Sequence record: OR493421.1
Strand: one strand, 5' to 3'
DNA: 64,000 nt
The translations under genes and the position numbers were made by a program. Position 1 is the stretch's first letter. Each line of letters starts with the position of its first letter. The notes under the pieces were generated by a model. It was given only the letters and a program-made list of their open reading frames with translations, did no database searches and was not told the DNA's origin. This document shows positions 8,948-63,854 of this stretch, piece after piece.

Positions 8948-8974
8948 ATAGTACAGGGCTGTAAATATTTACAA
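8948..8974 (-). promoter_or_regulatory. candidate phage promoter TTGTAA-N15-TACTAT
   Basis: Minus strand agTTGTAA atatttacagccctg TACTAT; same spacing as three other copies. Confidence 0.6.
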
Positions 8975-8975
8975 C

Positions 8976-9152
8976 TTAAACGACTTCTTCTTTAGAGAAG
9001 AGATGCTCAACGTCAGAACGCATCCAACGCATATTTTTCCCCTCGCTAACGAAAGGCTGGGGGACAGTACCTTTGCTAATACGAATTTTCAGGGTTTTAA
9101 CGGAAATACCCAGAAGTTTAGCTAACTCTTTAAGACTGATCAGTGGTTGCAT
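8976..9152 (-). CDS. AlpA/excisionase-like HTH DNA-binding protein (58 aa, not in ORF track)
   Basis: Hand translation MQPLISLKELAKLLGISVKTLKIRISKGTVPQPFVSEGKNMRWMRSDVEHLFSKEEVV; ATG directly follows stop of 9153-10043. Confidence 0.8.
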   Translation of the reverse strand: MQPLISLKELAKLLGISVKTLKIRISKGTVPQPFVSEGKNMRWMRSDVEHLFSKEEVV

Positions 9153-10043
9153 TTATTTACCTTTAGTAGCTTCAGTAGTAGCGTATTTTTTGAGGAAATG
9201 ACGAGGAGCCCCACGGCGATAGATAATCGCTAAGAAATCCTCTTCGGACATATCAATGTCAAAACGAATATTGAATTGAACGTGTAATGCTTTAGCACGT
9301 TCGATATCTTCTCTCGTTCTTACGTTTGTGGGAAACAAACACAATAACGAGGTTAATGTGTTTAGAGCCAAAGCGTATTGTGAGTAAGTTGTGATTTTCT
9401 TTTCACCGGGACGGAGTTCTCTAACGTATTTGCTGAGTAACTCAGGAATAGGCATAACCCCGTTAAGAAACGCGTCCACGTCCTTATCGGAGAAAACAAT
9501 TCCAAACTCGCGCTTAAACCGTTCGATGCAAATAACATCCCCGTATAGGAACTCTCTTGAAGCATTTCCTAGAGAGTGATGTCGATGATAAAAGGCGGCC
9601 AGCGCCTCGTAAAGTTTATCGTGAAATTCATCAGAGACGGGCTTGCGGTGCATGACTTTCATACTTTCGGCCATTGTCCGACATGCCGCCTCAAGCGCAT
9701 GCATGTTAACCTTCCCGGTAGTAATTGAAATACCGTTTTGAATAACGGTATCTTTACCCTTTAGACTTTTCATCGCGGGGATCAGGAGAAGGAATCGGGT
9801 CCTTGTTGATCGTAGCTGTCTCGGCTGTTGTAGTTGGGAGTGTTTAATAAAGCTTGCAGGCATTGGTTCACCGGGCTCTAAAAGATGAGGGTGCCCAAAA
9901 CGATCGTACCAATACCGCGAAGAATGCTTTAATCTTCCAGTAGGCTGTTCATTTCTTGATTTATTCTTATCCGATGGGTCATTCGGATTAAACTCCACAA
10001 CGACATTGTCTGGAGAGATGACTACTTTAATTTCTTTTTTCAT
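9153..10043 (-). CDS. hypothetical protein
   Basis: 296 aa ORF, AGGGA SD. Confidence 0.8.
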   Translation of the reverse strand: MKKEIKVVISPDNVVVEFNPNDPSDKNKSRNEQPTGRLKHSSRYWYDRFGHPHLLEPGEPMPASFIKHSQLQQPRQLRSTRTRFLLLIPAMKSLKGKDTVIQNGISITTGKVNMHALEAACRTMAESMKVMHRKPVSDEFHDKLYEALAAFYHRHHSLGNASREFLYGDVICIERFKREFGIVFSDKDVDAFLNGVMPIPELLSKYVRELRPGEKKITTYSQYALALNTLTSLLCLFPTNVRTREDIERAKALHVQFNIRFDIDMSEEDFLAIIYRRGAPRHFLKKYATTEATKGK

Positions 10044-10068
10044 ACCAAATATCCCTAAAAATGAATGA

Positions 10069-10854
10069 CTACGCGACGCTTTTAAGTTTATCTAGAGCAA
10101 TAAACTTGGCTCTTGATCTCGCCAGGAGTGTGCGTTCTGTTTCTGGTCCTTTGCGATAAGACTCTCCGATCACTTTGTAATCGTTCTTATCCACCAGTAC
10201 GCAGATCAGAATACCGGAATAGATATCCCTGACGTGATCTTTGAGTTCATGATCCATCGTGGCTTCTTTAGCAGTGAAGTAAGACTCGTGTTTGATGGTG
10301 GTTACTACCCGGCGAGCTTTCAGAGTTTCCTCTACTGCGAACGCAATAGCCTTTTCGATTTTGTGAACACCCTCCCGTGATTCGTATTCGGTAGGATTAT
10401 TCAGGAGAAAATCGATTTCTTTAGGATGCGGTTCACACATTATCCCGCAGAATTCTTTTACGAGATAAGCGCCTACCAGATCGCACGGCATAAACTCTTC
10501 TACGAGGGTCTCAGGTGTTAAAACCACCTCACTGATACGATCACCCCATTTAGATTTAAAACTTGATATATCGTGTCCTGTGGGGTATTCGGTATCGAAG
10601 ATATCGCTACCGATAGTGACCCAGGCGTGAAGAGTATTGCGAGCCATTCCAACGTCAACATCCAGTCGACGATTCAAAACGGAACTTACCGCTAAAGCGG
10701 CTACCGCGCAATCTCCGTTATTAATCGCAACCGAAGCGCTATGCATGGTTCGCCTTACATCATACATGCCTTCCTCGAATTTATTCCAGAAGTAGGTAAA
10801 CCATTCGAAAGTATTCAGGATGGTCAGGCGATCTTTAAGCTGGGTCTCTAACAT
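10069..10854 (-). CDS. putative transglutaminase-like (Cys-His-Asp) domain fused to Gp49/66-like C-terminal domain
   Basis: GDCAVAAL, LHAWVTIG, IFDTE triad; C-term KHESYFTAKEA...ILICVLVDKNDYKVIGES...ARSRA resembles Phage_gp49_66. Confidence 0.55.
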   Translation of the reverse strand: MLETQLKDRLTILNTFEWFTYFWNKFEEGMYDVRRTMHSASVAINNGDCAVAALAVSSVLNRRLDVDVGMARNTLHAWVTIGSDIFDTEYPTGHDISSFKSKWGDRISEVVLTPETLVEEFMPCDLVGAYLVKEFCGIMCEPHPKEIDFLLNNPTEYESREGVHKIEKAIAFAVEETLKARRVVTTIKHESYFTAKEATMDHELKDHVRDIYSGILICVLVDKNDYKVIGESYRKGPETERTLLARSRAKFIALDKLKSVA

Positions 10855-11372
10855 TACCGAACTCCTTTATTCTTAACTTTCAAGAAATACCGCGGTGGAT
10901 TTTCTAATGTCAGGCAGTAACCTACGACATTGTCGGGATGTGGACGAGAGTCATCCACATCAATCAGTTCAACCGAGCCAGGAATGACACCCATTTCGGT
11001 AGTGAGTGTTATTCCTATTTGCATCGCCATGAGCTGATAAACGCGTTCTTCTACTTCTAAGAACGTGTATTCGTTGGTGCTAAAGACAGGAGGATCCAGT
11101 TCGGCTAAAGCCACACTTTTAGGCATAACCAACTTGGATTGATCAATTGGGATATTTACTCCTGCGATAAGCGGGACTCCGTTTAAGTCTTTGATGGGAT
11201 TGAACATCCCATCGGTGTTCCCGACATGACTGTTTAGCCATTTGACAATAGCTTTCACCATACCAGCCGGTGTGACGGGTTCGCCGTTGGACTCACTGGA
11301 AAAATTAAACTGTGTTATCTCCAGCTTGTTATCTTTATTAACGGTCAGGTTCCCAAATCTAACGACTTTCAT
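10854..11372 (-). CDS. hypothetical protein
   Basis: 172 aa ORF. Confidence 0.75.
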   Translation of the reverse strand: MKVVRFGNLTVNKDNKLEITQFNFSSESNGEPVTPAGMVKAIVKWLNSHVGNTDGMFNPIKDLNGVPLIAGVNIPIDQSKLVMPKSVALAELDPPVFSTNEYTFLEVEERVYQLMAMQIGITLTTEMGVIPGSVELIDVDDSRPHPDNVVGYCLTLENPPRYFLKVKNKGVR

Positions 11373-11382
11373 GTGTTACCCC

Positions 11383-11685
11383 TTAATCACGATCGACCAA
11401 CACGATGCCTTCTTCCATCCCGTCGGCGGCTACACCCAACAGAACACAGTGTAAACGATCAGGAGCCGGCCAAGCGCAGCCGTGGAAGATGTCAGTTCGG
11501 CCCTCATCATCCACCCAGTTACCGGCTTCAGAATTGGTTTCGACTTCCCATTCGAAGGTATTTCCGTCTGCGTCGATATGAGGGTGGGTCAGCAATGCGG
11601 TGTTGGTGTCAGGGGCTACAACGACCATACCGTTGATATCTTCGTCGCCAGTAAATTCCATTGGTTTAACCAAATAAATATTCAT
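11383..11685 (-). CDS. conserved phage hypothetical protein (paralog of 17946-18257)
   Basis: MNIYLV..VVVAPD..A..THP...W..LHCVLLG. Confidence 0.75.
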   Translation of the reverse strand: MNIYLVKPMEFTGDEDINGMVVVAPDTNTALLTHPHIDADGNTFEWEVETNSEAGNWVDDEGRTDIFHGCAWPAPDRLHCVLLGVAADGMEEGIVLVDRD

Positions 11686-11728
11686 GTTGTTCTCTCCTAA
11701 AAAAGATTATGGTTTGTTCTACATAAGG

Positions 11729-11757
11729 ATAATAAAGGTCTGTTTTTATTTACATGT
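11729..11757 (-). promoter_or_regulatory. candidate phage promoter ACATGTAA-N15-TATTAT
   Basis: Minus strand acATGTAA ataaaaacagacctt TATTAT ccttat GTAGA; immediately downstream of terminator. Confidence 0.6.
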
Positions 11758-11762
11758 GCAAT

Positions 11763-11793
11763 AACTCCTACTCCCTTATCGGGAGTAGGAGTT
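11763..11793 (-). terminator. repeated terminator hairpin (copy 1)
   Basis: CTCCTACTCCC-TTATC-GGGAGTAGGAG, identical 27-mer at 31690-31716. Confidence 0.8.
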
Positions 11794-11801
11794 AGATTGA
11801 C

Positions 11802-12317
11802 TCAGCGGGTAACTTGTTTGAAAAGACCTAAATGTTCTTTATAGTTGAAAACGGAAGCGTATTTCTTGAAGCTATGAGTGAAGCTGCACCCGTCGTTGTC
11901 GTACTTTAAGGTGACTTGAACGATGTCGTCTTCTATTTTACCTGGGTCTCTAGCAAGACGTACTTCCAGATAATACTCTACCCCCGATTCACCCGTTTTC
12001 CAATGCTTAAGGAAACCCTCCGAAAGAACAGAAGAACGCTCTACGCTATGATTACCGTCAATTAATAAACGGGCTTTTATCAACGATTCACAAATAGTTA
12101 AGCGCAGATCGCCGGTTAACCATTCACTATGAATCGGGGAGAAGAGTCGAACTCCGATATAAGCGAAGTCGAGCGCTTGAGTGAGATTAGGTTTAGAGGC
12201 CAGCAGATAATCACCCCAATAAACCTTAACGTTATACCCACACCCTTCTCGATACCCTACGCAGGAAAGATTACCTAAATTATACAGTGGAATACGAACA
12301 ACGTTTTCTTTAGCCAT
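11802..12317 (-). CDS. hypothetical protein (start corrected to MAKENV)
   Basis: GGAGAAATAAAA precedes ATG at 12317. Confidence 0.7.
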   Translation of the reverse strand: MAKENVVRIPLYNLGNLSCVGYREGCGYNVKVYWGDYLLASKPNLTQALDFAYIGVRLFSPIHSEWLTGDLRLTICESLIKARLLIDGNHSVERSSVLSEGFLKHWKTGESGVEYYLEVRLARDPGKIEDDIVQVTLKYDNDGCSFTHSFKKYASVFNYKEHLGLFKQVTR

Positions 12318-12415
12318 TTTTATTTCTCCGATATTTACGAAAGGAATGAGAGTAACCCACAAGATCACTCTCACCTAGGTCTACTGACCATACTATTAAA
12401 TTTAATTACGCTTCG

Positions 12416-13117
12416 TTATCCGATGACCAATTCTTCGTAAAACTTAACATAGTCCGATTCCGAAGGCGACCAAATCTGAGTGGCTCGATCAAGATCACTC
12501 ATAACTTCAGAACCCTCTCCCGCGCCCCAACGACGAATTACCTGCATGGCGACACCGATTGCGTTCTGGTAGGAATCCGATTCCCCCAATCCACTCAAAC
12601 CAGTGTACGACAGCGCGATAGAGGCCAGATGTACAAGTTGATAAAGCTCGCTGATCGCGTTCACGTTGTAATCGTAAATCCCCGCTCTTTTGAGCTCCCG
12701 CAAGAGCGTAGTGAAGAAAAAGGGATTGCTGTCGAGCTGATCCGCGCTGGCAATTGTTAAATCAGATCGGAAACTAAGATATCCCCATTGACGATAGGGG
12801 ATATCGTGCCTAAAATGGTAATCGATTTTGGTTTCAGGTTTCATCATCATGATGGCGATATCGATTCGAGCAATCTCGTTGCGATGAATAGCAAAATCCA
12901 AGGTCCTCGCCAAATCTTCAGAATACATGGCGCGGAGGACGTTATCAAATCGCTCTTCATCATACCCACGGGCAGCATTTTGGGTAGGGTCACTAAAAAC
13001 CCCCTCCCATTTTGCTGAACCGATCTTCTTAATCGCTTTGCTCACCAGCTTAAATGATTTAGAGTGATTAAAGAAGACGTCGTCTGAAGTGGCATTAATG
13101 TCATAGTTCTTACGCAT
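12416..13117 (-). CDS. hypothetical protein
   Basis: 233 aa ORF, AAGGA SD. Confidence 0.8.
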   Translation of the reverse strand: MRKNYDINATSDDVFFNHSKSFKLVSKAIKKIGSAKWEGVFSDPTQNAARGYDEERFDNVLRAMYSEDLARTLDFAIHRNEIARIDIAIMMMKPETKIDYHFRHDIPYRQWGYLSFRSDLTIASADQLDSNPFFFTTLLRELKRAGIYDYNVNAISELYQLVHLASIALSYTGLSGLGESDSYQNAIGVAMQVIRRWGAGEGSEVMSDLDRATQIWSPSESDYVKFYEELVIG

Positions 13118-13142
13118 GATATTTTATCCTTTATTGTCGGAA

Positions 13143-13838
13143 TTATTTATTTATTTTAACAACAAACCACATGTAAGCGCCGTACAGCGCGTTACCGGTG
13201 ATGACCGTCCACATCGCTACCATGGACCAAGAACCGGGTTGGTCTAAAGCAGGAATGACCCACATGTAAATAGAAGCGACATCGACCAGTATCCAGAGTA
13301 ACCATTGTTCGGAATACTGTTTAACCATCAAGCCCATAGCGATTAAGCTCGCTACCATCGTAAACGCATCTAATACAGGTGAACTATCCCCGATATGACG
13401 AAGGAACAAGCTTACTGCAAAGGTCCCTGCCAAAACAACGAACGTCATCTGAAGGAACTGAAGGAGTGACAATCGTTTAACAGATACGTCAACGCCAGCA
13501 TCAGTCTTATTCAGCAATGTTTTACGCCATTCGTAAATACCCCAGAACTGGAATCCGAAGTAAATGACGTTAAGCGCCATGTTGCCGTAGAGTTGTTGCT
13601 TGTAGGAAACGATCGCGTAGAGAACTACCCCTAATAACCCCCAATAGTAATTGGAGAGTCGACCTTTAGCAACAAGAATAACACAGACGACGTTAAATAT
13701 TCCAGCCCAGAATTCCAGTGGCGAAGCGGAAATACTCCCGGCCACAACAGCAGCGATGGCTACGACTAACCACAGCCATTCCTTACGACTCCATCCGCTC
13801 TGGAAATCAGTATAGATTACGCTAAAAAGTTCTTTCAT
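13143..13838 (-). CDS. pnuC: nicotinamide riboside transporter PnuC
   Basis: Multi-TM protein; CVILVAKGRLSNYYWG, LDAFT, EQWLLWILVD motifs; adjacent to nadR. Confidence 0.93.
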   Translation of the reverse strand: MKELFSVIYTDFQSGWSRKEWLWLVVAIAAVVAGSISASPLEFWAGIFNVVCVILVAKGRLSNYYWGLLGVVLYAIVSYKQQLYGNMALNVIYFGFQFWGIYEWRKTLLNKTDAGVDVSVKRLSLLQFLQMTFVVLAGTFAVSLFLRHIGDSSPVLDAFTMVASLIAMGLMVKQYSEQWLLWILVDVASIYMWVIPALDQPGSWSMVAMWTVITGNALYGAYMWFVVKINK

Positions 13839-14948
13839 TTAAAAGTCACCTGAGTTAACACGTTGAGTGAAGGTTTTGATAATTTCGTAAGCCTGGTCGA
13901 ACCTAACTTTGTAGTCGGAGGAAGAAATATGGAACGTTCTTCCTTCCGGGAACTGGTTAGGGAACTCCAGACTCATGAGGTTAAATAATTCAGTTGTCCG
14001 TTGTCTTTCGGGATTACTACGAAGGCCGTCATCAACCCACTCTACAGTAGGTTCGAGTACGATGACCAGATCGTAGTTTTCCTCAGCCGCTATCGCAGAG
14101 ACGATACGATTAGGTTTCCCTTCATACAACCGATGGTAGTATTCGGTAATGAACGCATTCGTATCCACAATGCAAATGCGATTAGCCGAACGCATGGCCT
14201 GGATTTCCAGTTCCTTATGGCGATAAGCGATGATTGGGTAATCGTCGCTACGGAGTGTCGATTCTGAACCACAGAGCTCAGTCTCGCAATACGTCCGACC
14301 GTACTCCTCTACCCAGGACGTATTAAACATCTTAGCCAGATTCTTGACCATGACGCTTTTACCGCAAGATTCCTGGCCGAGGATGACAATCCGTTTGGTG
14401 TAGTCCTTACGAACAATAGAAGGGAGGTATTCCCAGTTGGCGTAAAGATTCTCACGAATTTTAGTCGCACTAATGGGAACCGCTGTACGATGCGCATCAA
14501 CCACGACGTGACTGACTTCAGGAAGATGCTCCTCGTAACCTTTATCGTAATCGATTTCACTACTGAAAATGGCCACGGTCTGAGCAATCCGACGAGTGTT
14601 GTCGACTGATCCGATTCCTTTATAGTTCTTGTGCTGTTCCTCAGTGTAGATCTTCCTGAGGAGGTTGCAGTAAGCGCTCCATCCGTTGGGAAATTCCGGG
14701 ATGTCATCTTCGATGATATATTTAATATCAATGTGGTCCGAATCAGCGTAATGCTGCTGTAACCAACGAAGACGGTTAGTGAACGTCAACGCCTTCTGAT
14801 CACGAGGACATTGTTGCGCTAACCAGCGACTGTCGTGACTTAACACAACGATAACTTTCTTAGCCTGGAGGGAGGCTTGGGTGATGAGGTTGATATGACC
14901 CTGAGTGAGCGGGGCGAATTTACCAACGACGATGCCGATATCAAACAT
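13839..14948 (-). CDS. nadR: NadR-type bifunctional NMN adenylyltransferase / ribosylnicotinamide kinase (no HTH)
   Basis: GKFAPLTQGH nucleotidyltransferase motif, ISATKIR, P-loop GQESCGKS, EYGRTY, WVDDGLR. Confidence 0.95.
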   Translation of the reverse strand: MFDIGIVVGKFAPLTQGHINLITQASLQAKKVIVVLSHDSRWLAQQCPRDQKALTFTNRLRWLQQHYADSDHIDIKYIIEDDIPEFPNGWSAYCNLLRKIYTEEQHKNYKGIGSVDNTRRIAQTVAIFSSEIDYDKGYEEHLPEVSHVVVDAHRTAVPISATKIRENLYANWEYLPSIVRKDYTKRIVILGQESCGKSVMVKNLAKMFNTSWVEEYGRTYCETELCGSESTLRSDDYPIIAYRHKELEIQAMRSANRICIVDTNAFITEYYHRLYEGKPNRIVSAIAAEENYDLVIVLEPTVEWVDDGLRSNPERQRTTELFNLMSLEFPNQFPEGRTFHISSSDYKVRFDQAYEIIKTFTQRVNSGDF

Positions 14949-19844: not shown

Positions 19845-19881
19845 GATTTTAATTCCTAAAGTTGGGTATTCATAAAAGTAA

Positions 19882-19909
19882 TATAGAGCTAGCAAAAGCT
19901 AGCTCTATA
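19882..19909 (-). terminator. terminator hairpin
   Basis: TATAGAGCTAGC-AAAA-GCTAGCTCTATA. Confidence 0.7.
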
Positions 19910-19912
19910 GAG

Positions 19913-20170
19913 TCAGTCTTTTTCTTCGAAGAAGAAGTCGGTTTTTAGTAACACCACGACTAGAGCGAGTCCAATTAAACAGACCCAGATATTCTGATAT
20001 TGTCCCAACAAACACCCAAAGATAAAGGAGATGAAAGGCATTGCTGGGAAGGATCCCTTCTTCCACGATAACTTAGGAATAGGTTTACCGCCCATTCGTT
20101 TAACTTCCAGAACCACTGTAACAACAATGGAAATAAGTAAAAACCCAAGAAAGGCCCATAAGAAATTCAT
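19913..20170 (-). CDS. small membrane protein
   Basis: three hydrophobic segments. Confidence 0.75.
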   Translation of the reverse strand: MNFLWAFLGFLLISIVVTVVLEVKRMGGKPIPKLSWKKGSFPAMPFISFIFGCLLGQYQNIWVCLIGLALVVVLLKTDFFFEEKD

Positions 20171-31685: not shown

Positions 31686-31720
31686 TATACTCCTACTCCC
31701 TTATCGGGAGTAGGAGTATA
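31686..31720 (-). terminator. repeated terminator hairpin (copy 2)
   Basis: TATACTCCTACTCCC-TTATC-GGGAGTAGGAGTATA. Confidence 0.85.
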
Positions 31721-34419: not shown

Positions 34420-34470
34420 GATGTTTTCCCTAAAAATAACCGTTGGATTTACAAAGAGATGTTAAAGGTT

Positions 34471-35034
34471 TTATTTTATCTGCGTGTTGATTTCACCAGA
34501 GGAAACTTTCTCTTTAAACTCACTCGCGGATTTTAGAAATTCTTCTTTGGGGTTTTCACATTCCAAAAAGCGTGAGGCGATGAGACGTATGATGTTCATG
34601 TTACGGGCCAGGTCGATACCTTCTCCTCTCGAACCCCAGAGAGTTCCCAACCCCATCTCGTCAGCCAATGCCTGCAGACTATAAAAACCCAACTTATTTG
34701 GATCTTTAATGGAAAAGATGTAATCCAGATCGGATTCCCTAACCTTTTTCTCTTCCTCCTCCTTTTCCCACCGTTCTAAGAGATCGCCTCTCCCCACCTC
34801 AATCAGAATGAGTTGGTCCTGTTGATACCAGGCGACACTTCCCCTCCCTTCCAACCAAAGAGAATAGCCGATATCAGACTCATTTTTAAACTCTTTTGAT
34901 TTATCTTTATCGCCGTAACGATCATTGTAACTGTATTGAACGATAGCTCGACACCCACTTTCAAAATGGGACATGTACGGACCGAGGTCTTCTTTTATAA
35001 AAACCAAATCGCCTTGATGAAATTTCTGTTTCAT
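34471..35034 (-). CDS. conserved phage hypothetical protein (start likely MKQKF)
   Basis: QKF..GDLVFI..LG..MSHF.SG..AIV.YSY..YG..YSL..G..AWY motif; AGAGGAATAAAC leader. Confidence 0.75.
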   Translation of the reverse strand: MKQKFHQGDLVFIKEDLGPYMSHFESGCRAIVQYSYNDRYGDKDKSKEFKNESDIGYSLWLEGRGSVAWYQQDQLILIEVGRGDLLERWEKEEEEKKVRESDLDYIFSIKDPNKLGFYSLQALADEMGLGTLWGSRGEGIDLARNMNIIRLIASRFLECENPKEEFLKSASEFKEKVSSGEINTQIK

Positions 35035-40180: not shown

Positions 40181-40231
40181 TGATTACTCCGAAAAGATAA
40201 TGTAGAACTGAAAATAGATAAAGCCATCCAA

Positions 40232-51467: not shown

Positions 51468-51480
51468 CGAAGAAGAGTAA

Positions 51481-51512: not shown

Positions 51513-51521
51513 TTAGTTAAC

Positions 51522-53300
51522 TCATTCCTGGGTCCAAGCGCCCCACGACCCGCCATTCAGCCATCTAAAGTAGCGAACATTGGTAGTCATATTGAACAAT
51601 CGCAGAACCGCAAAATTATTTGTTCCGTCAGATACAAGACGGGCACTCAATATTCCAGTCCCAGTCATCCCAGTAGGAATACCGGTATGAAGCGCTATAT
51701 TGGAAATGTAATAATCCTGAGATGAAGTCGCTAGACTAGTAAGATCGGTCGCTGTTGTTAATGGAACAAGATCCCTGGACATGTTAATCCATCTTGTCCC
51801 GGTAGAGAAGTTAGGAGTCCCGTTAAGATTAATAAAGCTCCCTTCAAATACACCGGCTCCAGGGGCGGTAAGGTACTTCAGTCTTGTTTGATTAGACCCA
51901 CCTAATTGCTCGAAACACTCCCTGTTGTTAACCAACCCATTATTATAAGACGCACTATAACCCACCTGGCCTCCCACTGAGGATATTGGGAAGCCCTGAT
52001 GCCCGGTAAGAGTATAAGGTCGGCCTAAATTAACCCTTGCAAGGCTGGTTTTGGGAGCAACGGTTCTAAAATGACGATTATAAATATAACACCCGGTAAC
52101 GTCAGTTATAACAATATCGTCTTCACCTGTATCGTCGGCATCACAATCTCTGAAATTGGATTGAATGGTGCTGTTCCAGGCTCTAACAATGTTGATCCCG
52201 CCTTTATTAATATGCCAGAAGTTACACCCTATAATCTCCGAACCAACTATACCTATGTTGGTGTCAGAGAGAATACCCCATCCGGTGTTCACGTTAACAT
52301 AAGACCCGTCGAAATAGACCCCGATAATTTTTAAAGTGTCTAAGTCGTACCCGGCTTCATTAAAAAGGAATACTCCAGATGTTTCCCCAGGGACTATTTG
52401 GTTTCCCGGGGAAATGGTTCCACCACCGCCGATCATTAGAGCGTGATCACGATTGTTGCCCCAAAGTTCGCAGTCGGTAACGTACCAGTCGGTTGTGTTA
52501 ATGCAAGCTTTCGCAGCGGCTAATCTTGTTTTCCTTAAATGCACTACAAATGAAGAATTTGTATTCCCGGATCCTTTCTTTGTCCCTAAAGCCACGCCAT
52601 AGAGATCGGATTTCACTCCCCCAGACGAAACCCCATCCAACTGACATTCATCCAATCCGCAGGAATTGCCGTTGGTGAGGTCGATGGACCAATTGTTGGT
52701 TCTGGAGGTAGCTAGGTCAGTTATCCTTAAATTGGACAGTCTTATATTACTTATCCCATTAGCCGCGGGCGTTGCGTAATTAGATTGCGCTATAATGGGG
52801 AAGTCTCCTCCTGACCACACCAAGCATAATTTAGACCTTCCTGGACCTATGAGGTCGGTCGGCTTGCTGATCATCAATGTGGAATTGATGTATCTCGTCA
52901 TGTCGTCAAGTTCGAACGTGGAGGAGCTAGACGCCAACATTCTATTTATAGCTGCTGCATTAGCGGTAGCCGCATCGAGGTCGGCCCCATAAATCTTAGG
53001 AGCGCCCCACGCTGGATTTCTTATATTAGCTCTCCCGGTTATGACGTAGGGGGCGTCAAGAAATGTCTGAACGGTATCTCCAGAACTTGTCCCTACGTTA
53101 CTTGCGCCGGCAGTCCCGGTCAGCCCTGACAGGAAATTTTTTACGTAATTATAAATTCCCGTAAGTGTAAAGCGTTTTATACCCAATCTGTCGGTATACT
53201 GATCAAGATCGGAATTAACCGCTTCGTCTATTTTTTCTGCATTAAATATCTGATCCAAAATGTTACCCGAAGGAACGGGATTTTTGGTAGGTGATGTCAT
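51522..53300 (-). CDS. tailspike/depolymerase 4
   Basis: anchor; beta-helix (ISNIRLSNLRI); knob-like C-term RYFRWLNGGSWGAW. Confidence 0.88.
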   Translation of the reverse strand: MTSPTKNPVPSGNILDQIFNAEKIDEAVNSDLDQYTDRLGIKRFTLTGIYNYVKNFLSGLTGTAGASNVGTSSGDTVQTFLDAPYVITGRANIRNPAWGAPKIYGADLDAATANAAAINRMLASSSSTFELDDMTRYINSTLMISKPTDLIGPGRSKLCLVWSGGDFPIIAQSNYATPAANGISNIRLSNLRITDLATSRTNNWSIDLTNGNSCGLDECQLDGVSSGGVKSDLYGVALGTKKGSGNTNSSFVVHLRKTRLAAAKACINTTDWYVTDCELWGNNRDHALMIGGGGTISPGNQIVPGETSGVFLFNEAGYDLDTLKIIGVYFDGSYVNVNTGWGILSDTNIGIVGSEIIGCNFWHINKGGINIVRAWNSTIQSNFRDCDADDTGEDDIVITDVTGCYIYNRHFRTVAPKTSLARVNLGRPYTLTGHQGFPISSVGGQVGYSASYNNGLVNNRECFEQLGGSNQTRLKYLTAPGAGVFEGSFINLNGTPNFSTGTRWINMSRDLVPLTTATDLTSLATSSQDYYISNIALHTGIPTGMTGTGILSARLVSDGTNNFAVLRLFNMTTNVRYFRWLNGGSWGAWTQE

Positions 53301-53321
53301 TATCTAATTCCCATCAGGTTA

Positions 53322-53365
53322 AAATTGGCGGTGGGGATGTTATCCCCATTGTCCACCGCCAATTT
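53322..53365 (-). terminator. long hairpin between tailspike genes
   Basis: AAATTGGCGGTGG...CCACCGCCAATTT with inner GGGGAT-GTT-ATCCCC. Confidence 0.75.
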
Positions 53366-53382
53366 GACTATTTATGAGGTTT

Positions 53383-55542
53383 TTAGCTCACTACGGCAGC
53401 GCTAATTATTACACCGTCAGTATCGGATGTGGGTGTTCCGACTTTAGCGCGTTTATTCCCTGTCGAGTCATACCACTCATGAACATCGCCATTAACGATA
53501 TGTTGTCGTGAATATGATTTACTCAGCCCACTATTATGTCCGGTTGACAACGGCATGTCGTTGTTATAAATATTCAGGTTGCCTATTATAAATTTAGTTT
53601 GAGACCCGGCAATAAATGTACCCGGCCTAAATCTAACAATAAGCTGTCCCGTATCATTAGGTATAAAGGGCAATACGCATTTTTGCCATCTGGGGTTAGT
53701 GTCAAGCAGAATATTTCTCCGGTATAGTAAAACGGAACCGTCGGAGTTAAATATTTCAGCTAACACACTTTTGGTTGGCGTGGAAGACGACATCTTAACT
53801 TCAAAGTCGATCCAGGTCTTTTTACCCGCGATTGGATTTATCAGGGCGTATACCCTAGCAGTGGCGTCGGCTGCCGTTACTTCCATTGCTTCATTTAAAC
53901 CCCCATATGAGTTATTCATGGGGGTTTTAGTTGCAGACACTGCAGTGAGGTCGGCTGTTATACCAGAGTAAAGGTTATTATAATCTACCTTCTGGATCCC
54001 TATGTTTAGGGACGAGGCCTGAGGGTGTCCTGATAAATAAGACAGCGGATCGATCGTTTTAAAGACGTCGTTTAAATTGGACAGCGGGTTGATATCACTA
54101 CCTTCCTGTAAAGCCAAGCAATGAGATGCGTCAAACACGTTCGTTCTGCTAAGATTACCTATCGCCGTCTGACCTATACTCGAAGCGAACTCTATAATGT
54201 ATTTAGGCATTCCGCTATCGTACAAATCAGAAAAATACAGATTCCCCACATTAGGCGTGTATGACTTGATCATCGGAGCTACAACAGAACCGTTAGTGTT
54301 GATGACATTATTGGCCAGGAATCTCACCCCAGACAGGTATCCGATGGAAGTTGTTTCCACGTGGTGTCTGTCATTATTAAGGTTATCAGTTAAACCTACG
54401 CCCGAATTAGCTAAAAGAATATGCGTGTCGCCTTCAACAAGGAACTCCTGTCCGAACTTGTTCGCCAAGAACACCAAACCGCGTCCTGCGTTGTTGGTCG
54501 TTATGCCCGGTTCAATCCAAACATCGTGAGAGTTCCCGGTTCTATTGCCTGTTCTATACCAATCGTTTCTTGAGATATTGAAAGGGGTCGCCGGACCATT
54601 TGTCGTAGTCCCATTTGTACCCAAAGCCAATTTAATCCCATAAAGGTTGTCGGCAAAAGTACAGTTGTCGATCACCCCGCCGGCGCTATAACCAGAGATA
54701 CAAACACCTATCGTATCCTTAGTGACATCACCGTAAAAGAATGAATCCCTGACCCTAACGTACGGCATGTCGATGGAATTATTGCCGATCGCACACTCGG
54801 TGTATCTCGACATAACTAACCTTTCAAAAAGATGCATGCCGGAAGCATTTCGAGAAGTCGACTTATATCTTACTGCCCCCTTACCACCAGAAATAGTCAT
54901 ATCACTCAGACCACTTCTCACCGGATTATTTGTAAAGTCAAATAAATATCCTGATGACAGAATGATCTTAGTCGATAACATGCTTTCACCCCTAACGTTA
55001 AACACGAAAGAGTTAGAGGAAGTTATGTCCAGCCCAGGACCGGTGTAAATAAAACAACCGTTCTCTATAGTCAGCAGCGGTCCTTTCTGCAACATAAAGG
55101 GTAGTTCGTTAGCACCTGCAGCAGCTCGTTTATACGTGACATCCATTAAACACGCCCACCAATCGTTGAAAGCCTCGGTGTCGTCGGCGCTACCGTCACC
55201 TTTAGCCCCGAAGTTCTTTCTCAGCCCAGCGGTGCCGTCTAAAAGGAGATCGCCTACTTTCCTCGTCATTACCGCCGGGGCCCTGGTAGAAGGAACTGAG
55301 AGACGATCTTCGACATTACTGCCGTCAGCAGTACCTATCTTGCTCGCCCCGGTGACGCCCGATAACCCACTTAACCACGTTTGGATGAAATTATAAATCC
55401 CACTTAGTGTAAATCTCTTTTTACCGAATCTATCAGTGTATTCAAGATCATCGCTATTAACGACTTCGTCGAGTTTTTCCCCGTTAAAAATCTGATCTAA
55501 AATATTCCCGCTAGGAATAGGATTCTTAGTTGGCTGTGTCAT
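53383..55542 (-). CDS. tailspike/depolymerase 5
   Basis: anchor nearly identical to tailspike 4; NFGAKGDGSADDTEAF pectate-lyase-3 entry; CBM-like C-terminal sandwich. Confidence 0.9.
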   Translation of the reverse strand: MTQPTKNPIPSGNILDQIFNGEKLDEVVNSDDLEYTDRFGKKRFTLSGIYNFIQTWLSGLSGVTGASKIGTADGSNVEDRLSVPSTRAPAVMTRKVGDLLLDGTAGLRKNFGAKGDGSADDTEAFNDWWACLMDVTYKRAAAGANELPFMLQKGPLLTIENGCFIYTGPGLDITSSNSFVFNVRGESMLSTKIILSSGYLFDFTNNPVRSGLSDMTISGGKGAVRYKSTSRNASGMHLFERLVMSRYTECAIGNNSIDMPYVRVRDSFFYGDVTKDTIGVCISGYSAGGVIDNCTFADNLYGIKLALGTNGTTTNGPATPFNISRNDWYRTGNRTGNSHDVWIEPGITTNNAGRGLVFLANKFGQEFLVEGDTHILLANSGVGLTDNLNNDRHHVETTSIGYLSGVRFLANNVINTNGSVVAPMIKSYTPNVGNLYFSDLYDSGMPKYIIEFASSIGQTAIGNLSRTNVFDASHCLALQEGSDINPLSNLNDVFKTIDPLSYLSGHPQASSLNIGIQKVDYNNLYSGITADLTAVSATKTPMNNSYGGLNEAMEVTAADATARVYALINPIAGKKTWIDFEVKMSSSTPTKSVLAEIFNSDGSVLLYRRNILLDTNPRWQKCVLPFIPNDTGQLIVRFRPGTFIAGSQTKFIIGNLNIYNNDMPLSTGHNSGLSKSYSRQHIVNGDVHEWYDSTGNKRAKVGTPTSDTDGVIISAAVVS

Positions 55543-55555
55543 TAAAAACTCCTGT

Positions 55556-55579
55556 TCCCCCTGAGGTTAGTCAGGGGGA
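55556..55579 (-). terminator. hairpin between tailspike genes
   Basis: TCCCCCTGA-GGTTAG-TCAGGGGGA. Confidence 0.75.
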
Positions 55580-55585
55580 CGATTG

Positions 55586-55780
55586 TTATCTGGTAAAGGC
55601 TAATGGGGTGCTGGGTCCTTCAGTTAGCCAGTAAACTGGAAGTTTGATGCTTATTGTTCCAGTGATCCCACTGAGTATCAGAGAGGGCCGTACAACAATT
55701 ACATTGCTCGGGTCGGAATAGGTGTGTTGTTTGGTGACTCGCACCCCAACACACTTAGACGTCGTTAACGACGTTCTCAT
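55586..55780 (-). CDS. uncertain short ORF downstream of tailspike 6
   Basis: 64 aa beta-rich, weak SD; may be a hitchhiking fragment. Confidence 0.3.
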   Translation of the reverse strand: MRTSLTTSKCVGVRVTKQHTYSDPSNVIVVRPSLILSGITGTISIKLPVYWLTEGPSTPLAFTR

Positions 55781-55853
55781 CTACGATAGCCTTTACGGAC
55801 CATAGTCGATGTGAATAGTTGCATCCGCCATTATCATTTCCCGAATGTACACG

Positions 55854-57725
55854 CTAACCAGTAATCAATTCAGCATAAGTATCCTGCAATGTAGCTAAAT
55901 TCATTGAATACCTAACCGTCTGTCCTTTACTGACAGTAAAGTTTCCTGAAACTTGCCCTGTCATTTTCGCAAAATACGCGGCGGAATGCCCGTCCACTGT
56001 AACAATGAACGAACTGTTCGTTGCATCATTGAGTTGCGCTACAAAGTACACTTGTTTTTGACATCTTGTGGTCCACACGGTATCTGTGGTCGATACACCC
56101 CAACCAATGCGCAGTCGTCTACCGTTGCCTGTTGTCAACGTACCAGCAACATTGACCTCAGATCCTGGCGTGTACAATTTTCCAATGGCGTCCTGGTGTG
56201 GTATGTAAACAGGCGCTCCACTATAAGTCCCCCCAAAATTAATATTTTCGACCGTGATTCTGGAAGAACTATTGTTACCGCCGTACACGGCATATGTTGG
56301 GCTGGTCTGATTATCTGTGTTCCAGATTATCTGACCATCTTTTATGGTTAGCGTCGCGGGTATGCCATCGTCAATCGCAAAACATGCTTTCGAACTAAAC
56401 CCAAGCGATGTATTACCTTTTGTCACAGCCACATTATGCGCAATCAACCGCACCGATACAGTAGAGACACCATTAAGGCCAGTATACGAACCAACTTCAG
56501 AGCACAGTCTCGCAAATTGGTTTACTGAAACCCCCTCTGCGTTTTCAATCGTCACATCAGCATAATTTCCGAGTTTAAACACGCAGTTGGGTCCGTATCC
56601 CCTGGCTCTTGAGTAGTGGACTATCGAGTCCACAATTTCTACAGAGTACGCATCTTTCGTTTGCTGAGATGCCGCCGGGTCAGTCTGAGATGCTATAAAC
56701 AGAGCAGAAATAGTGTGGAATCCAGTACAGCCATAGATATAGCTTTCACTAGGCCCCATCAGTTTTTTCGTAATAGCTACTGAGGTGCATTTCTGGAATT
56801 TAAACTTAGCGGGCTGGAAGTTCTCAATATTAATATCATGAGAATCAAGGAAAAAGGCACCTGCCGTGCAGTTACCCTCTAGGATTGAATTAATGAAACC
56901 AAAGCCGTTTGTTCCTGCAAAACAAACCGAACCGCCACAGTTATATGCAACTACTTGGGAGGCTGCGTTTATACTTTGAACGCCAACTTTCTGAGTCACG
57001 CCATCAACAACTACGGTACGACCAAGAGACCCAACAAGCCACCCATTGTAATTCCGACCATTAACAATGAAGGTAGGACCGATAACGTCCTCTTCGAACC
57101 TTACAGCAAAGGATGATGCCTCTCGGTTGTCTGGGAACGCACCTGCGTCTGTTTTATCACCCAAAATATGGATAGATATGAAGGGGTCATAGCACCTGAT
57201 GAACTTAAACTGAGCTTCACCTTTCATTTGATAGTGACCAACAACGCCGGCAATGTTACCACCATAGTTCCAGTAGTGATACGCGGACTCAACCGTTGAC
57301 TGAAATACATATTGGCGAGTTATCGGAACCCAATCCTTGGTGTCATTTACAATAATCTTTGAGTTATACCCACTGGCGTCAAACGAATCATTGTATGCTG
57401 CTAAAAATGCGTTCTCACCACGCAATCCCCTTGCGTAGTAGTTTGATAGCATAATGCATTTATCTTTATTTATAAGCGCGCCTAATGCCGCTTCCACTGT
57501 AATACCACTGGACGTCCCTACGTTAGACGCCCCGGAACTTGATCCTAGGCTGCTCATCCAATTCTGGATGACGTTATAAAGTCCTGAAAAAGTAAATCGC
57601 TTCTTACCGAAGCGGTCAGTATATTGGAGGTCGTCGCTATTAACGACCTGGTCTATTTTTTCAGCATTAAAGAGCTGGTCGTTCTTAGCTGAACTAGGAA
57701 CGGCGTTTTGTGTTGGGAGTGTCAT
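55854..57725 (-). CDS. tailspike/depolymerase 6 (start corrected to MTLPTQ)
   Basis: GAGGAATAGCA precedes ATG at 57725; anchor; beta-helix body. Confidence 0.88.
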   Translation of the reverse strand: MTLPTQNAVPSSAKNDQLFNAEKIDQVVNSDDLQYTDRFGKKRFTFSGLYNVIQNWMSSLGSSSGASNVGTSSGITVEAALGALINKDKCIMLSNYYARGLRGENAFLAAYNDSFDASGYNSKIIVNDTKDWVPITRQYVFQSTVESAYHYWNYGGNIAGVVGHYQMKGEAQFKFIRCYDPFISIHILGDKTDAGAFPDNREASSFAVRFEEDVIGPTFIVNGRNYNGWLVGSLGRTVVVDGVTQKVGVQSINAASQVVAYNCGGSVCFAGTNGFGFINSILEGNCTAGAFFLDSHDINIENFQPAKFKFQKCTSVAITKKLMGPSESYIYGCTGFHTISALFIASQTDPAASQQTKDAYSVEIVDSIVHYSRARGYGPNCVFKLGNYADVTIENAEGVSVNQFARLCSEVGSYTGLNGVSTVSVRLIAHNVAVTKGNTSLGFSSKACFAIDDGIPATLTIKDGQIIWNTDNQTSPTYAVYGGNNSSSRITVENINFGGTYSGAPVYIPHQDAIGKLYTPGSEVNVAGTLTTGNGRRLRIGWGVSTTDTVWTTRCQKQVYFVAQLNDATNSSFIVTVDGHSAAYFAKMTGQVSGNFTVSKGQTVRYSMNLATLQDTYAELITG

Positions 57726-57767
57726 TGCTATTCCTCGAGTCAGGAAGGTTGAAATATCGTTAGGCAT

Positions 57768-57801
57768 AAAATCCAACCGCCTATAAGGGCGGTTGGATTT
57801 T
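57768..57801 (-). terminator. terminator hairpin overlapping an ATTTTATGC element (57764-57772)
   Basis: AAAATCCAACCGCC-TATAAG-GGCGGTTGGATTTT. Confidence 0.8.
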
Positions 57802-57941
57802 AATTAACCAATGAACAAACATTTTCCGGTAAATTCAACACCCCGGTACCCGGGTAGATGATTCCTTTCCATCTTTGCTACTAGGCATAACGACAGTGGA
57901 CTAGTTAAAGACACCCTGTCGGTTACTCAAATCACAACGAG

Positions 57942-59918
57942 TTATTGTTCAAAAACACAAACCGGGCCCATAAAAATGTCCCCGGTCATTTGATAATGCC
58001 TGAAACCTACATTGGCTTTAACCGCGCCATTTGGAACGGAGATAAAACCACTGCAAATAACTGCGTTCGTAACTGTGCTGGATTGAGTATTCAGGTTAAC
58101 CCCAACGTTAACGTGACTAATCTCGCTACCTCTTATGTCATACCAAGTGACGCCGAAATAACCGTTACCAGATGTCGCAACTAAGTTATTCCAGAGCAAC
58201 TTAGTTGAAAGATATAATATCCTTCCTGGATGGACCTGAATGTCCTGCCCCACTAATGTTGTTGTTCCGCCTCCAGTTGATGTACCCGTGATTTTGACAG
58301 AATTTCCCAATGTCGGATTGTTGGCAAACGTCACAGTTGGTTTTACTGGCTCACCAGAAGATACTGAATAATCGACAGTCCATCCGGTAAGATCGCCCGT
58401 AGAAAAATTATAGTTTCTCATTGGGGAAACGGTATTTCCTAAATCGAGATAATCTACTCCACCTTGGATGTCGAAGAAAATGTTCTTAATGGAAACCTGG
58501 GGTCGGCCACTGACAGAGTTCACTACCATGGATGACTGCATTTTACCGTATTTTCCCCAACTCCCCCCGTCCGCACTCAATCGACAAAAACCATTGGTAA
58601 GGAAGAAAGCCGGTTTGCCGGTATTAGTACCTACCTGAGCGACATCATTACCTCCGTCGATATTGACGGAGAAAAGATCGACTTGTGGTTTTCTTTTACC
58701 ACTGGTATAAGTGATAACGCCGTAGGGCATTAGAGAATTATTTTCAAAATGACAACCTAAGAAACTTAAGGACCCTGAGTTTAATTTGAAAACAGTATCT
58801 GTGTAATCAAAAGATGTTTTATAGAAGAAGGCGTCAATGAAATGACCGTCTGGGGTCGAATACACTGCCGAAGTGGAGTTATCGGAATTTTTCCCGTTAA
58901 AGATGACACCGCCATTAAAAGATATATTTTCTCCGGCGTCATTTAAACAGTTGAAGTGCACACCATAGCGCCAGAACTTCCCAAGATGCACATTGTTAAA
59001 TTGCAAAAGATAGACCGACTTATCTCCAATGTATAAACAGTCTCTAAATCCTTCTATCCAAAGATCATTAAAGACGACCCCCGATACCTGAGTGGAGTTC
59101 CCTGGATAAATCCCGACCCCATCAAGAGTTCCAGAAACTATCAATGGGGGAGAGCTCCACTCATCTCCACCGTACGGACCCTGCAAATTTAATTTTATTT
59201 TACTACCAGCGTTGTAAGTTTTATTAATATCACCCATAACTCTGACTGCGAAACCTGAGTTTAACTTGGTTGGATCGACAATAAGTCTGGACAATCCCAT
59301 GTTCAACTCGCCTTCCCCGGCGTAAACAACGAGCTGCTTAGAAAACAAATATCTCGCGTTAGAATTTTCAGAAGTGATGGTGTGACCCATCAATTGAAGA
59401 TTTAAAGCCTTTTGAAGAGAATCGGAATCATCATTAATTTTATTCCCAAAACAACCCGCTTGTTCAAAGGTATATTCCCTTTTTAAGTTCCTCTTCCATC
59501 TCGCCCCCTTGGGAGTAACGAAAATTAGAAACCCGTCATCGTCTGAGGTTTTGTCCAGGGGATCGTAATAAAGCTCACCCCCTCCAACCGGGGGAGTTGA
59601 CGAAGCCCCCCATCCAGAGTGATAAGATTTAAGAATAATTCGCTGATAATCTACCGATGGCTCCACGGATCTCAATGTAGTGACGTCGATACAAGTCCCT
59701 ATAAATTTAGACCCGTCAGGGAGTCCAACGTTATTTTGAAAATCACTTCCTATCTGATTAATCAGATTCTGAAGTCCGGCGGTAGTTAATCTTTGTTTAC
59801 CGAATCGGTCTACGTAATAATTAGCATCAGAGTTAACTATCTGATCTAATTTCTCAAAGTTAAATCTCGAATCCAACAAGTTATTGCTGGGAATCGGTAA
59901 TTGGGTAGGTGTGGTCAT
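57942..59918 (-). CDS. tailspike/depolymerase 7
   Basis: anchor; TSP1/gp66-like N domain (LRSVEP..QRIILKSY..GGG..DDG); beta-helix; CBM-like C-term (NYNFSTGDLTGW). Confidence 0.9.
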   Translation of the reverse strand: MTTPTQLPIPSNNLLDSRFNFEKLDQIVNSDANYYVDRFGKQRLTTAGLQNLINQIGSDFQNNVGLPDGSKFIGTCIDVTTLRSVEPSVDYQRIILKSYHSGWGASSTPPVGGGELYYDPLDKTSDDDGFLIFVTPKGARWKRNLKREYTFEQAGCFGNKINDDSDSLQKALNLQLMGHTITSENSNARYLFSKQLVVYAGEGELNMGLSRLIVDPTKLNSGFAVRVMGDINKTYNAGSKIKLNLQGPYGGDEWSSPPLIVSGTLDGVGIYPGNSTQVSGVVFNDLWIEGFRDCLYIGDKSVYLLQFNNVHLGKFWRYGVHFNCLNDAGENISFNGGVIFNGKNSDNSTSAVYSTPDGHFIDAFFYKTSFDYTDTVFKLNSGSLSFLGCHFENNSLMPYGVITYTSGKRKPQVDLFSVNIDGGNDVAQVGTNTGKPAFFLTNGFCRLSADGGSWGKYGKMQSSMVVNSVSGRPQVSIKNIFFDIQGGVDYLDLGNTVSPMRNYNFSTGDLTGWTVDYSVSSGEPVKPTVTFANNPTLGNSVKITGTSTGGGTTTLVGQDIQVHPGRILYLSTKLLWNNLVATSGNGYFGVTWYDIRGSEISHVNVGVNLNTQSSTVTNAVICSGFISVPNGAVKANVGFRHYQMTGDIFMGPVCVFEQ

Positions 59919-62649: not shown

Positions 62650-62694
62650 GATGGTGCTTCCTAAAAGTATAAAATAAATTGGCGGGACTATGAT

Positions 62695-63075
62695 TTATTC
62701 GTAGCGCGCGAGTTCATTAGCGAACTCAAGCATGTTAAGCTTGGTCAGATCCAAATTAAAGGTCGCGGTCACAAAGAAACCATTGAAACTATCCCCCAGC
62801 ACTTTATAGGAGTGCGATATTAAGATGTCACCGTAACCGGATAATTGCTCGATAACTCTTAGGAAAACGTCATCGGAAATCCCGTGCTCTTTGAGCAACG
62901 CAGAGATATCCCCCGGACCCACGCAGGTTTCCTTATTGCAGAATTCAGCATTTACTACTTCAGGATTTAACGTTCCCAATAAACTAAACTTGGTCATATT
63001 GGTTTTGTCAAGTTTAGGGTAAAGGAATCTGTTAAGTTGATCGATGAGAATAATCGCTAATTCGTTACGGTCCAT
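62695..63075 (-). CDS. hypothetical protein
   Basis: 126 aa; GAGGT SD. Confidence 0.75.
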   Translation of the reverse strand: MDRNELAIILIDQLNRFLYPKLDKTNMTKFSLLGTLNPEVVNAEFCNKETCVGPGDISALLKEHGISDDVFLRVIEQLSGYGDILISHSYKVLGDSFNGFFVTATFNLDLTKLNMLEFANELARYE

Positions 63076-63099
63076 TTTATTACCTCTTACTATGAAAGA

Positions 63100-63567
63100 T
63101 TAAATGCGCTCAGTGCGCTGGGATGTAAAGGTTTCCGGGTCTTTAAGGAGTTCAGAAGATAAAAGACGTCTGGACCCCATATCCCCAAAATTCTTCCCGG
63201 TCAACAATCCCTCGTTAACCAAATTAGAAAAGAATGCGAGGCTACGCTGATCCCAAGGATGGAAACGTAGAGTCGCCTTAGTTAGTCTGAACATATCCAA
63301 AGCCAAAACGGTTATTCGCTTGGCCAGTCCCTTTCGCCTGTAATCTTCAGAAATCCAAATCGAAGCGTTCCATGTATTACTACCTGTTAAGGGTATTTTG
63401 GTCAAAACAAAGATCCCGCCTTCAAACCAAAATGCCCTACAATGCCCAGGTCCTCTTCGGATAGCCATCTGTATCCAATGCCGCATAATCCCCGTAGGAA
63501 GATAGTATTCCTCTGCATCGACGACATCCAAAACTGTTTCTGCGTCGGTCAGCATAACGATATCCAT
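63100..63567 (-). CDS. GNAT-like acetyltransferase
   Basis: SIWISEDYRRKGLAK motif A; DQRSLAFF. Confidence 0.7.
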   Translation of the reverse strand: MDIVMLTDAETVLDVVDAEEYYLPTGIMRHWIQMAIRRGPGHCRAFWFEGGIFVLTKIPLTGSNTWNASIWISEDYRRKGLAKRITVLALDMFRLTKATLRFHPWDQRSLAFFSNLVNEGLLTGKNFGDMGSRRLLSSELLKDPETFTSQRTERI

Positions 63568-63782
63568 TATCTGATCTCCAACAGAGTCCCATTAACCATT
63601 AAAAAGACACCCAGACCCAAAACACAAATGCTTAAAGAGAAATAGGTATTTTTATACCCGGACGCCCGACCCTTGTCTTTAATCTTATTCTCTTTAAAAT
63701 CTTTACGCAGTTCCAGGTACTTCAGGAAGAAATACACCGCAGCACCTAACAACAAGCAACCTGTTCCAAAAAGACCGTTCAT
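63567..63782 (-). CDS. small two-TM membrane protein (start corrected to MNGLFG)
   Basis: TTTAGGAATCAACATCATG leader. Confidence 0.75.
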   Translation of the reverse strand: MNGLFGTGCLLLGAAVYFFLKYLELRKDFKENKIKDKGRASGYKNTYFSLSICVLGLGVFLMVNGTLLEIR

Positions 63783-63821
63783 GATGTTGATTCCTAAAAA
63801 GTTATTGAGGTTTACACATAA

Positions 63822-63854
63822 ATAATATCGATCCAAAAAAGAATACAAGTAAAA
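63822..63854 (-). promoter_or_regulatory. candidate phage promoter TTTTACTTGTAT-N15-TATTAT
   Basis: followed by N6-GTAAA as at 31641. Confidence 0.65.

Follow-up and report, generated by a model that had tools for sequence, protein, structure and literature searches.

A minus-strand motif family in the last 64 kb of the YC1 genome

The stretch of DNA considered here, hereafter the window, comprises 64,000 nucleotides (nt) of sequence record OR493421.1 and corresponds to positions 188506-252505, that is, the last 64 kilobases (kb), of the genome of Klebsiella phage YC1 (100% identity, compared over window positions 8000-14000). The subject of this analysis is a family of intergenic elements on the minus strand of this DNA that are very probably early promoters, read by a phage RNA polymerase that is injected together with the genome. 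Four members of the family had been pointed out in an earlier reading of the window that was made from the letters alone (the sequence-only reading), under the pattern WTGTAW-N15-TAYTAT. Coordinates below are those of the window unless the genome is named, and genome-wide counts cover the complete YC1 record of 252,505 base pairs (bp).

An exact search recovers the pattern four times, exclusively on the minus strand, at 8948-8974, 11729-11755, 31641-31667 and 63822-63848. These starts agree with those given in the sequence-only reading, but three of the ends had been placed 2-6 nt beyond the 27-nt match because the upstream TTTTAC was included. Four matches compare with 0.12 expected, and none of 100 dinucleotide shuffles reached four; this statistic flatters the pattern, however, because WTGTAW-N15-TAYTAT was fitted post hoc to its own four AT-rich sites. 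The exact 15-nt spacing holds up across the genome, where six matches have a spacer of 15 and only one other match, with a spacer of 13, occurs among spacers of 12-20. The two genome-wide matches that fall outside the window (genome positions 89127 and 92072) can be set aside as chance occurrences, given their location within genes, their GC-rich spacers and the absence of the other conserved columns. The sequence said to be common to two of the sites, TTTTACTTGTATT, is indeed found at 31646 and 63827, and GTARA stands exactly 6 nt past the hexamer at 11734, 31646 and 63827, as had been described.

Alignment of the four sites showed that TATTAY-N6-GTA is the best conserved part, and this shorter pattern found further intergenic sites on the minus strand. 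A genome-wide scan with an iterated position weight matrix, of the kind that the sequence-only reading had proposed, yielded 22 strong sites, and a search with the core only added two weaker ones at genome positions 91120 and 178716. Thus, the count of four copies was too low, the family having 24 members in the YC1 genome and eight in the window. Furthermore, although the spacing between the two boxes was correctly perceived, the boxes are not separate entities but parts of one continuous motif of ~40 bp, ACWTGTA..TTTT.AGATCTATATTAY-N6-GTAAA, which spans approximately -35 to +6 around the predicted transcription start; the YC1 consensus reads ..tttACwTGTA.AttTTTt.AGatCTATATTAYc...gtGTAaA.

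With the first T of the hexamer taken as position 0, all 24 sites share A(-17), C(-3), A(+1) and A(+4), and 23 of them have G(+12), exactly 6 nt past the hexamer, with a variable spacer in between; counted from the predicted start, these five positions are -29, -15, -11, -8 and +1. The best-conserved part of the motif is CTATATTAY-N6-G. The hexamer ends in T in 68% of cases and in C in about one-third of the 22 strong members. Upstream, the columns -12 to -9 (-24 to -21 when counted from the predicted start) contain T in 59-86% of cases, and the equivalent columns of phiKZ are T-rich as well; the first box of the original pattern, which spans -21 to -16, dissolves into a more variable, ACWTGTA-like piece of which only the TA located 17-18 nt ahead of the hexamer is general (T 73%, A 100%). 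The conservation of this upstream part is no artefact of the way in which the sites were chosen, because a search with the core alone, which ignores the upstream part and gives 22 matches on the minus strand and two on the plus strand of YC1, picks out sites that also carry A(-17): this base is found in every intergenic match and is absent from the false positives in coding regions.

All 24 copies lie on the minus strand, between genes and upstream of minus-strand genes, while only ~6% of the window consists of gaps of more than 40 bp. The predicted leaders of the 24 sites have a median length of 40.5 nt. The four sites of the sequence-only reading, which it had proposed to mark the strongest early units, include the three best-scoring members of the window, although a motif score is not to be equated with promoter strength.

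The best-scoring member in the entire genome (31629..31669, minus strand; score 48.7) contains TATTAT at 31646-31641, with the start predicted at G 31634 and a 107-nt leader ahead of the gene at 31111-31527; the site is identical in the related phages Miami and BUCTxx100 and diverged yet recognisable in VB_ZK_P1. The member at 63810..63850 (minus; TATTAT 63827-63822; predicted start G 63815; score 45.4) would give the gene at 63567-63782 a 33-nt leader and is kept in Miami, VB_ZK_P1, phiKp_32 and BUCTxx100. At 11717..11757 (minus; TATTAT 11734-11729; predicted start G 11722; score 42.6), a 37-nt leader would precede the gene at 11383-11685. The fourth previously listed member, at 8936..8976 (minus; TACTAT 8953-8948; predicted start G 8941; score 37.5), is weaker but contains all five near-invariant bases; it adjoins the stop codon of the preceding gene, no hairpin intervening, and would give the gene at 8620-8901 a 40-nt leader, and the motif is kept in Miami, VB_ZK_P1 and phiKp_32.

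Two predicted promoters with CTATATTAC had been missed. The one at 265..305 (minus; hexamer 282-277; predicted start G 270; score 39.7) has a 37-nt leader, stands before a gene ending at 233 and has a terminator hairpin upstream at ~313-344. In the case of the other (19866..19906, minus; hexamer 19883-19878; predicted start G 19871; score 35.0; predicted leader of 27 nt), the CTATA of CTATATTAC is supplied by the 3' arm of the upstream hairpin, so that the terminator and the promoter overlap within 19866-19920; this hairpin is kept in phiKp_32 through changes on both arms. The remaining two members are weak candidates. At 34447..34487 (minus; TAACAT 34464-34459; predicted start G 34452; score 23.2), all five near-invariant bases are in place and a 33-nt leader would precede the gene at 34075-34419; the candidate at 40185..40225 (minus; CATTAT 40202-40197; predicted start G 40190; score 29.4) is the least certain member of the family because its leader would be only 10 nt long. 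A near-match, CATATTAC, in the divergent gap 42182-42296 was excluded as it lacks the conserved C and G. The motif does not occur at 42296-59918, a block of large tailspike genes with long intergenic gaps, which is consistent with later expression of this block from a different type of promoter.

The statement in the sequence-only reading that three sites come right after a terminator reflects the fact that at least seven of the 24 promoters directly follow a strong hairpin. Strong hairpins do stand just upstream of sites 11734, 31646 and 63827, but only that at 63857-63886 satisfies the U-tract rule of the terminator scanner. This hairpin (minus strand), which adjoins the 63827 promoter, has a 13-bp stem followed by a U-run (-25.4 kcal/mol, z = -8.0). 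The hairpin upstream of site 31646 (31691..31715, minus; -19.3 kcal/mol, z = -5.3) has the form CTCCTACTCCC-GATA-GGGAGTAGGAG, and that directly upstream of site 11734 (11762..11794, minus; -25.8 kcal/mol, z = -8.0) belongs to the same repeated family. Palindromic hairpins with the arms CTCCTACTCCC and GGGAGTAGGAG are found in six or seven intergenic copies in the genome, namely at window positions 11768-11788 and 31693-31713 and at genome positions 1769, 108167, 136134 and 173255, with a variant at 96490, and probably represent a shared terminator that acts in both directions.

The leader of the predicted 31634 start (31560-31634, minus strand) itself contains two hairpins in tandem (31627-31597 and 31590-31567), each with a run of six U behind it and both preceding the ribosome site of the gene at 31527. 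In VB_ZK_P1, the first of these hairpins is replaced and the second is kept via changes in both arms (CCGAGG/CCTCGG to CCAAGG/CCTTGG). Such an arrangement could yield a short early RNA or function as an attenuator. A scan of the 64-kb window against Rfam gave no match. Eleven consecutive C on the minus strand (63903-63913) shortly precede the terminator and promoter found at the right end of the record.

Conservation and counterparts in other phages

Phages Miami, KPN8, phiKp_32, VB_ZK_P1 and BUCTxx100 are related to YC1 with 89-95% identity. The record of the last of these (OR529409.1) is named Stenotrophomonas phage and gives Stenotrophomonas maltophilia as the host, yet over window positions 8000-14000 it is ~95% identical to the Klebsiella phages, and its chimallin, the nuclear shell protein, is 99.7% identical. 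We compared YC1 with the full genomes of Miami, VB_ZK_P1, phiKp_32 and BUCTxx100. The motif family is present in each of the four, with 22-27 clear sites confined to a single strand, and the relatives also carry sites of the same architecture that have no counterpart in YC1. Among 86 pairs of orthologous sites, the core and the upstream box each show a mismatch rate of 0.036, compared to 0.125 for the N6 spacer and 0.060 for the flanking intergenic DNA; at A(-17), C(-3), A(+1) and A(+4), not a single substitution is observed. Judging by these rates, the pattern is the footprint of a sequence-specific signal in which the spacer is free in sequence but fixed in length.

What kind of signal this is can be gleaned from the company it keeps. 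Searches of the PHROG database identify the chimallin gene (phrog_4795) at YC1 genome positions 103761-105773 as well as four families of phiKZ-type RNA polymerase beta and beta' subunits, for which Pfam matches are obtained, too. When YC1 is compared with phiKZ using tblastn, homologues of the non-virion set are detected at genome positions 102070-103674 (PHIKZ055) and 88956-91067 (PHIKZ071/073), and homologues of the virion set at 143485-147741 (PHIKZ178) and 147738-149351 (PHIKZ180). In phiKZ, Gp178 and Gp180 are subunits of the virion polymerase and Gp55 is a subunit of the non-virion polymerase; the genes for the non-virion subunits are of the early class, and those for the virion subunits of the middle class (PMC10612078). 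Because chimallin and homologues of both phiKZ RNA polymerases are encoded, YC1 is, by its gene content, a phiKZ-like, nucleus-forming jumbo phage, and a preprint already counts Miami among the chimallin phages. In the public annotation of YC1, nearly all products are called 'hypothetical protein', including all the polymerase subunits, and chimallin is labelled 'cAMP-binding protein'.

In all jumbo phages that encode RNA polymerases, early operons are preceded by a conserved, AT-rich stretch of ~10 nt near position -10, and wherever it has been tested, this motif is an early promoter for the virion polymerase (PMC7598289). In phiKZ, 28-32 early promoters have been described that consist of an extended -10 box with a T-rich tract upstream of -19 and lie mostly on one strand (PMC8244752, PMC10914365). 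The phiKZ genome contains TATATTAY-N6-G 26 times in the forward and twice in the reverse orientation (controls: 3 and 5), and one copy is located 66-80 nt upstream of PHIKZ054, the chimallin gene, whose primary start carries the early motif (PMC8244752). The YC1 chimallin gene likewise has a copy of the motif, with the start predicted 87 nt upstream. The suggestion in the sequence-only reading that the element heads early units is supported by this shared location and by the match to the phiKZ early promoters.

The correspondence extends to individual columns. The phiKZ and YC1 motifs share the core TATATTAC followed by 6 nt and G, along with the T-run at -11 to -9, A(-7) and A(-17), the latter being present in 24 of the 26 phiKZ sites and in all 22 strong sites of YC1. 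A matrix trained on the phiKZ sites alone ranks family members as nine of the top 11 matches in YC1. Both phages show a strong strand bias and an intergenic location of the motif, and the numbers are similar, with 26 pattern matches and 28-32 published promoters in phiKZ against 24 sites in YC1; the median YC1 leader is close to the 31-40 nt that are typical of phiKZ (PMC8244752). There are also clear differences. C(-3), which is invariant in YC1 (CTATATTAY), has no counterpart in phiKZ, where no preference is seen at this position; the YC1 hexamer ends in T or C and tolerates more internal variation; the upstream piece is ACWTGTA or ACATGnAGA in YC1 but TGTATTCAAA or ACTAAAAAA in phiKZ; and the start region, a conserved GTAAA in YC1, is TGA in phiKZ. 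Moreover, the phiKZ promoters have been mapped experimentally, whereas those of YC1 are predicted from sequence.

More distant phages present similar pictures. In AR9, the early consensus is AAATATATATTAT-(6N)-G+1, and transcription of phiKZ and phiR1-37 likewise starts 6 nt past the element (PMC5312081). This 13-nt element and AGATCTATATTAY of YC1, each followed by N6-G, agree in 11 of 13 positions, even though AR9 has uracil-containing DNA and a Gram-positive host, contains A in the place of the invariant C of YC1 and has no reported ACWTG-like upstream piece. The predicted early promoters of RisingSun and Joad (Erwinia) and of EL (Pseudomonas) have the form CCTATATTAC-N6-G, with C(-3) and with TA at -18/-17 as in YC1, but belong to a separate lineage and word the upstream piece differently. 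The chimallins of EL, RisingSun and Aphrodite1 share only ~34% identity with the YC1 protein, yet upstream of their genes we find cTAAA.ATTTTCA..CC..TATTAY-N6-G, as in YC1.

The polymerase that may read the element

The comparative evidence bears out one half of the proposal made in the sequence-only reading, namely, that the sites form a promoter class for a phage-encoded RNA polymerase, but not the other half, in which a sigma-like factor is involved. The domain Sigma70_r2 has no match at E <= 1 in six frames of YC1, so that the promoter of a phage-encoded sigma factor was dropped from consideration, even if a very divergent sigma would escape such a search; a control search obtained matches in 11 of 14 reference genomes. 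We also know of no sigma factor for phiKZ-type virion polymerases, and for these two reasons, the sigma-like option is not favoured. A search for PF00940, the T7-type single-subunit polymerase, likewise gave no match in YC1, but is uninformative because the control search was equally empty.

From the correspondence to the phiKZ sites, we infer the start point, the early timing and the reading enzyme of the YC1 promoters, and consider it highly probable that the injected virion RNA polymerase uses them as early promoters and initiates at the G located six bases past the hexamer. Under this scenario, the multisubunit polymerase packed in the virion, composed of the gp178 and gp180 homologues, would enter the cell together with the DNA and recognise the element without the host sigma-70. 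Transcription would then begin at the G of each site (in the window, the eight G positions given above), and the blocks of small early genes, as well as the chimallin gene, would be transcribed up to a hairpin terminator, often with the next promoter directly behind it. In AR9, transcription from early promoters is independent of new protein synthesis (PMC5312081). The virion-polymerase genes of YC1 (genome positions 143485-149351) have no copy of the motif upstream, consistent with their non-early class in phiKZ; the absence of copies here and in the tailspike block is as expected for later genes.

Several observations weigh against this assignment. The 10-nt core, with one mismatch allowed, is not enriched in the window on its own (11 matches compared to 7.7 expected); our confidence derives instead from the motif in its full length, its bias to one strand, its placement between genes and its conservation between phages. 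The public sequencing runs that contain this DNA are metagenomic or metatranscriptomic, and four of them, compared with window positions 28501-34500, contributed scattered short contigs that show no transcript starts. Two of the eight window members, 34464 and 40202, are weak, the latter with its very short leader. Because the hexamer resembles the -10 box of sigma-70 promoters, some activity of the host polymerase on naked DNA is possible. Finally, the virion location of the gp178/gp180-type polymerase of YC1 is predicted purely from homology.

Could another enzyme read the element? The alternative that fares best, although we judge it improbable, is that the sites are promoters of the second, non-virion phage polymerase, of the middle or late class. 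YC1 does encode homologues of this polymerase, and the timing of the YC1 sites is itself an extrapolation from other phages. The promoters that are known for these classes look different, however: in phiKZ, the middle promoters are marked by a weak motif, AT-rich or TACT, ~22-24 nt upstream, and the late promoters consist of TATG alone, at the start (PMC7598289, PMC8244752), whereas the late promoters of AR9 are AACA-N6-TA/G (PMC5312081). The YC1 motif fits the early class both in sequence and in position. Furthermore, a copy precedes the chimallin gene and another, weak one precedes the homologue of the non-virion subunits gp71/73; the non-virion polymerase has to be synthesised before it can act.

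Still less credible, in our estimation, is the possibility that these are host sigma-70 promoters with a short, 15-nt spacer that drive immediate-early transcription. The similarity on which this proposal draws is real: TATTAT spans -12 to -7 from the predicted G, with A at -11 and T at -7 as in a -10 box, and TTGTAT and TTGTAA share TTG with TTGACA. Sigma-70, however, strongly prefers T at -7, and about one-third of the strong members have C at this position. The TTG is not conserved in the first box across the family, and the invariant C(-3) and A(-17) are foreign to sigma-70. The scanner detects no canonical sigma-70 promoter with a 16-18-nt spacer at any of the four original sites, where the TTG box stands 15 nt away, so that the overlap with such a promoter that the sequence-only reading had raised as a possible explanation is not observed. 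The same motif, moreover, marks the early promoters of phiKZ, the replication of which is rifampicin-resistant (PMC7598289), and recurs in phages of hosts as varied as Pseudomonas, Erwinia and Vibrio. A related thought, that of a middle promoter of the T4 MotA type, draws on the TATAAT-like hexamer at -12 to -7 and on an upstream box centred at ~-30, in the place of the MotA box. There is no TTGACA at 16-18 nt and no TGCTTTA box, C is allowed at -7, and YC1 possesses its own polymerases; this candidate was dropped because YC1 is phiKZ-like rather than T4-like and the motif corresponds to the phiKZ early promoters.

That the family is a chance likeness of AT-rich intergenic DNA, or has a function other than that of a promoter, for instance as a repeat for protein binding or packaging, is hardly believable, since, post hoc as the original pattern from four AT-rich sites may be, and unremarkable as the short core is when a mismatch is allowed, all 24 sites lie between genes on one strand at a fixed distance upstream of genes, the invariant columns are free of substitutions across four relatives while the spacer varies, and the phiKZ-trained matrix recovers the same sites. 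As a cautionary observation on AT-rich matrices, the stretch at 114.5-117.5 kb of the YC1 genome, which is very AT-rich with few annotated genes, gets spuriously high scores; it might be a replication origin or contain RNA genes.

Returning to the probable early promoters of the virion polymerase, the role of their upstream part deserves a separate comment. The ACWTGTA sequence, often in the form of the palindrome ACATGT, occupies -35 to -29 from the predicted start, and its invariant A is common to phiKZ, RisingSun, EL and Aphrodite1. One could imagine that it is a second, lineage-specific recognition element that makes the Miami-group promoter a two-part one, but we regard this as a tentative idea that is rather unlikely to be correct. 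The upstream piece might also mark a subclass, WTGTAW versus ACATGnAGA, for example, immediate-early or high-strength units.

Probable early promoters of the Miami group

The element is of a known kind, the phiKZ-type early promoter, found here in a group of phages for which no description of promoters was located: none are annotated in the YC1 and Miami records, and our search of the literature found no description of Miami-group promoters. What is peculiar to this lineage is the invariance of C(-3), along with an ACWTGTA-like piece upstream and a start that reads GTAAA. The sites provide a map of 24 likely early transcription units for the Miami group, that is, YC1, Miami, KPN8, phiKp_32, VB_ZK_P1 and BUCTxx100, and this map flags unnamed small genes that are probably expressed first and thus are candidates for functions in host takeover and anti-defence. 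The promoter is short enough to be usable in reporters of early expression or in the engineering of therapeutic phages. If the tentative two-part organisation turns out to be true, a multisubunit polymerase that lacks a sigma factor would contact a specific base ~29 bp upstream of the start. In any case, the positions that are shared between lineages, A at -29, C at -15, A at -11, A at -8 and G at +1, are targets for studying how a virion polymerase may find its promoters without sigma.

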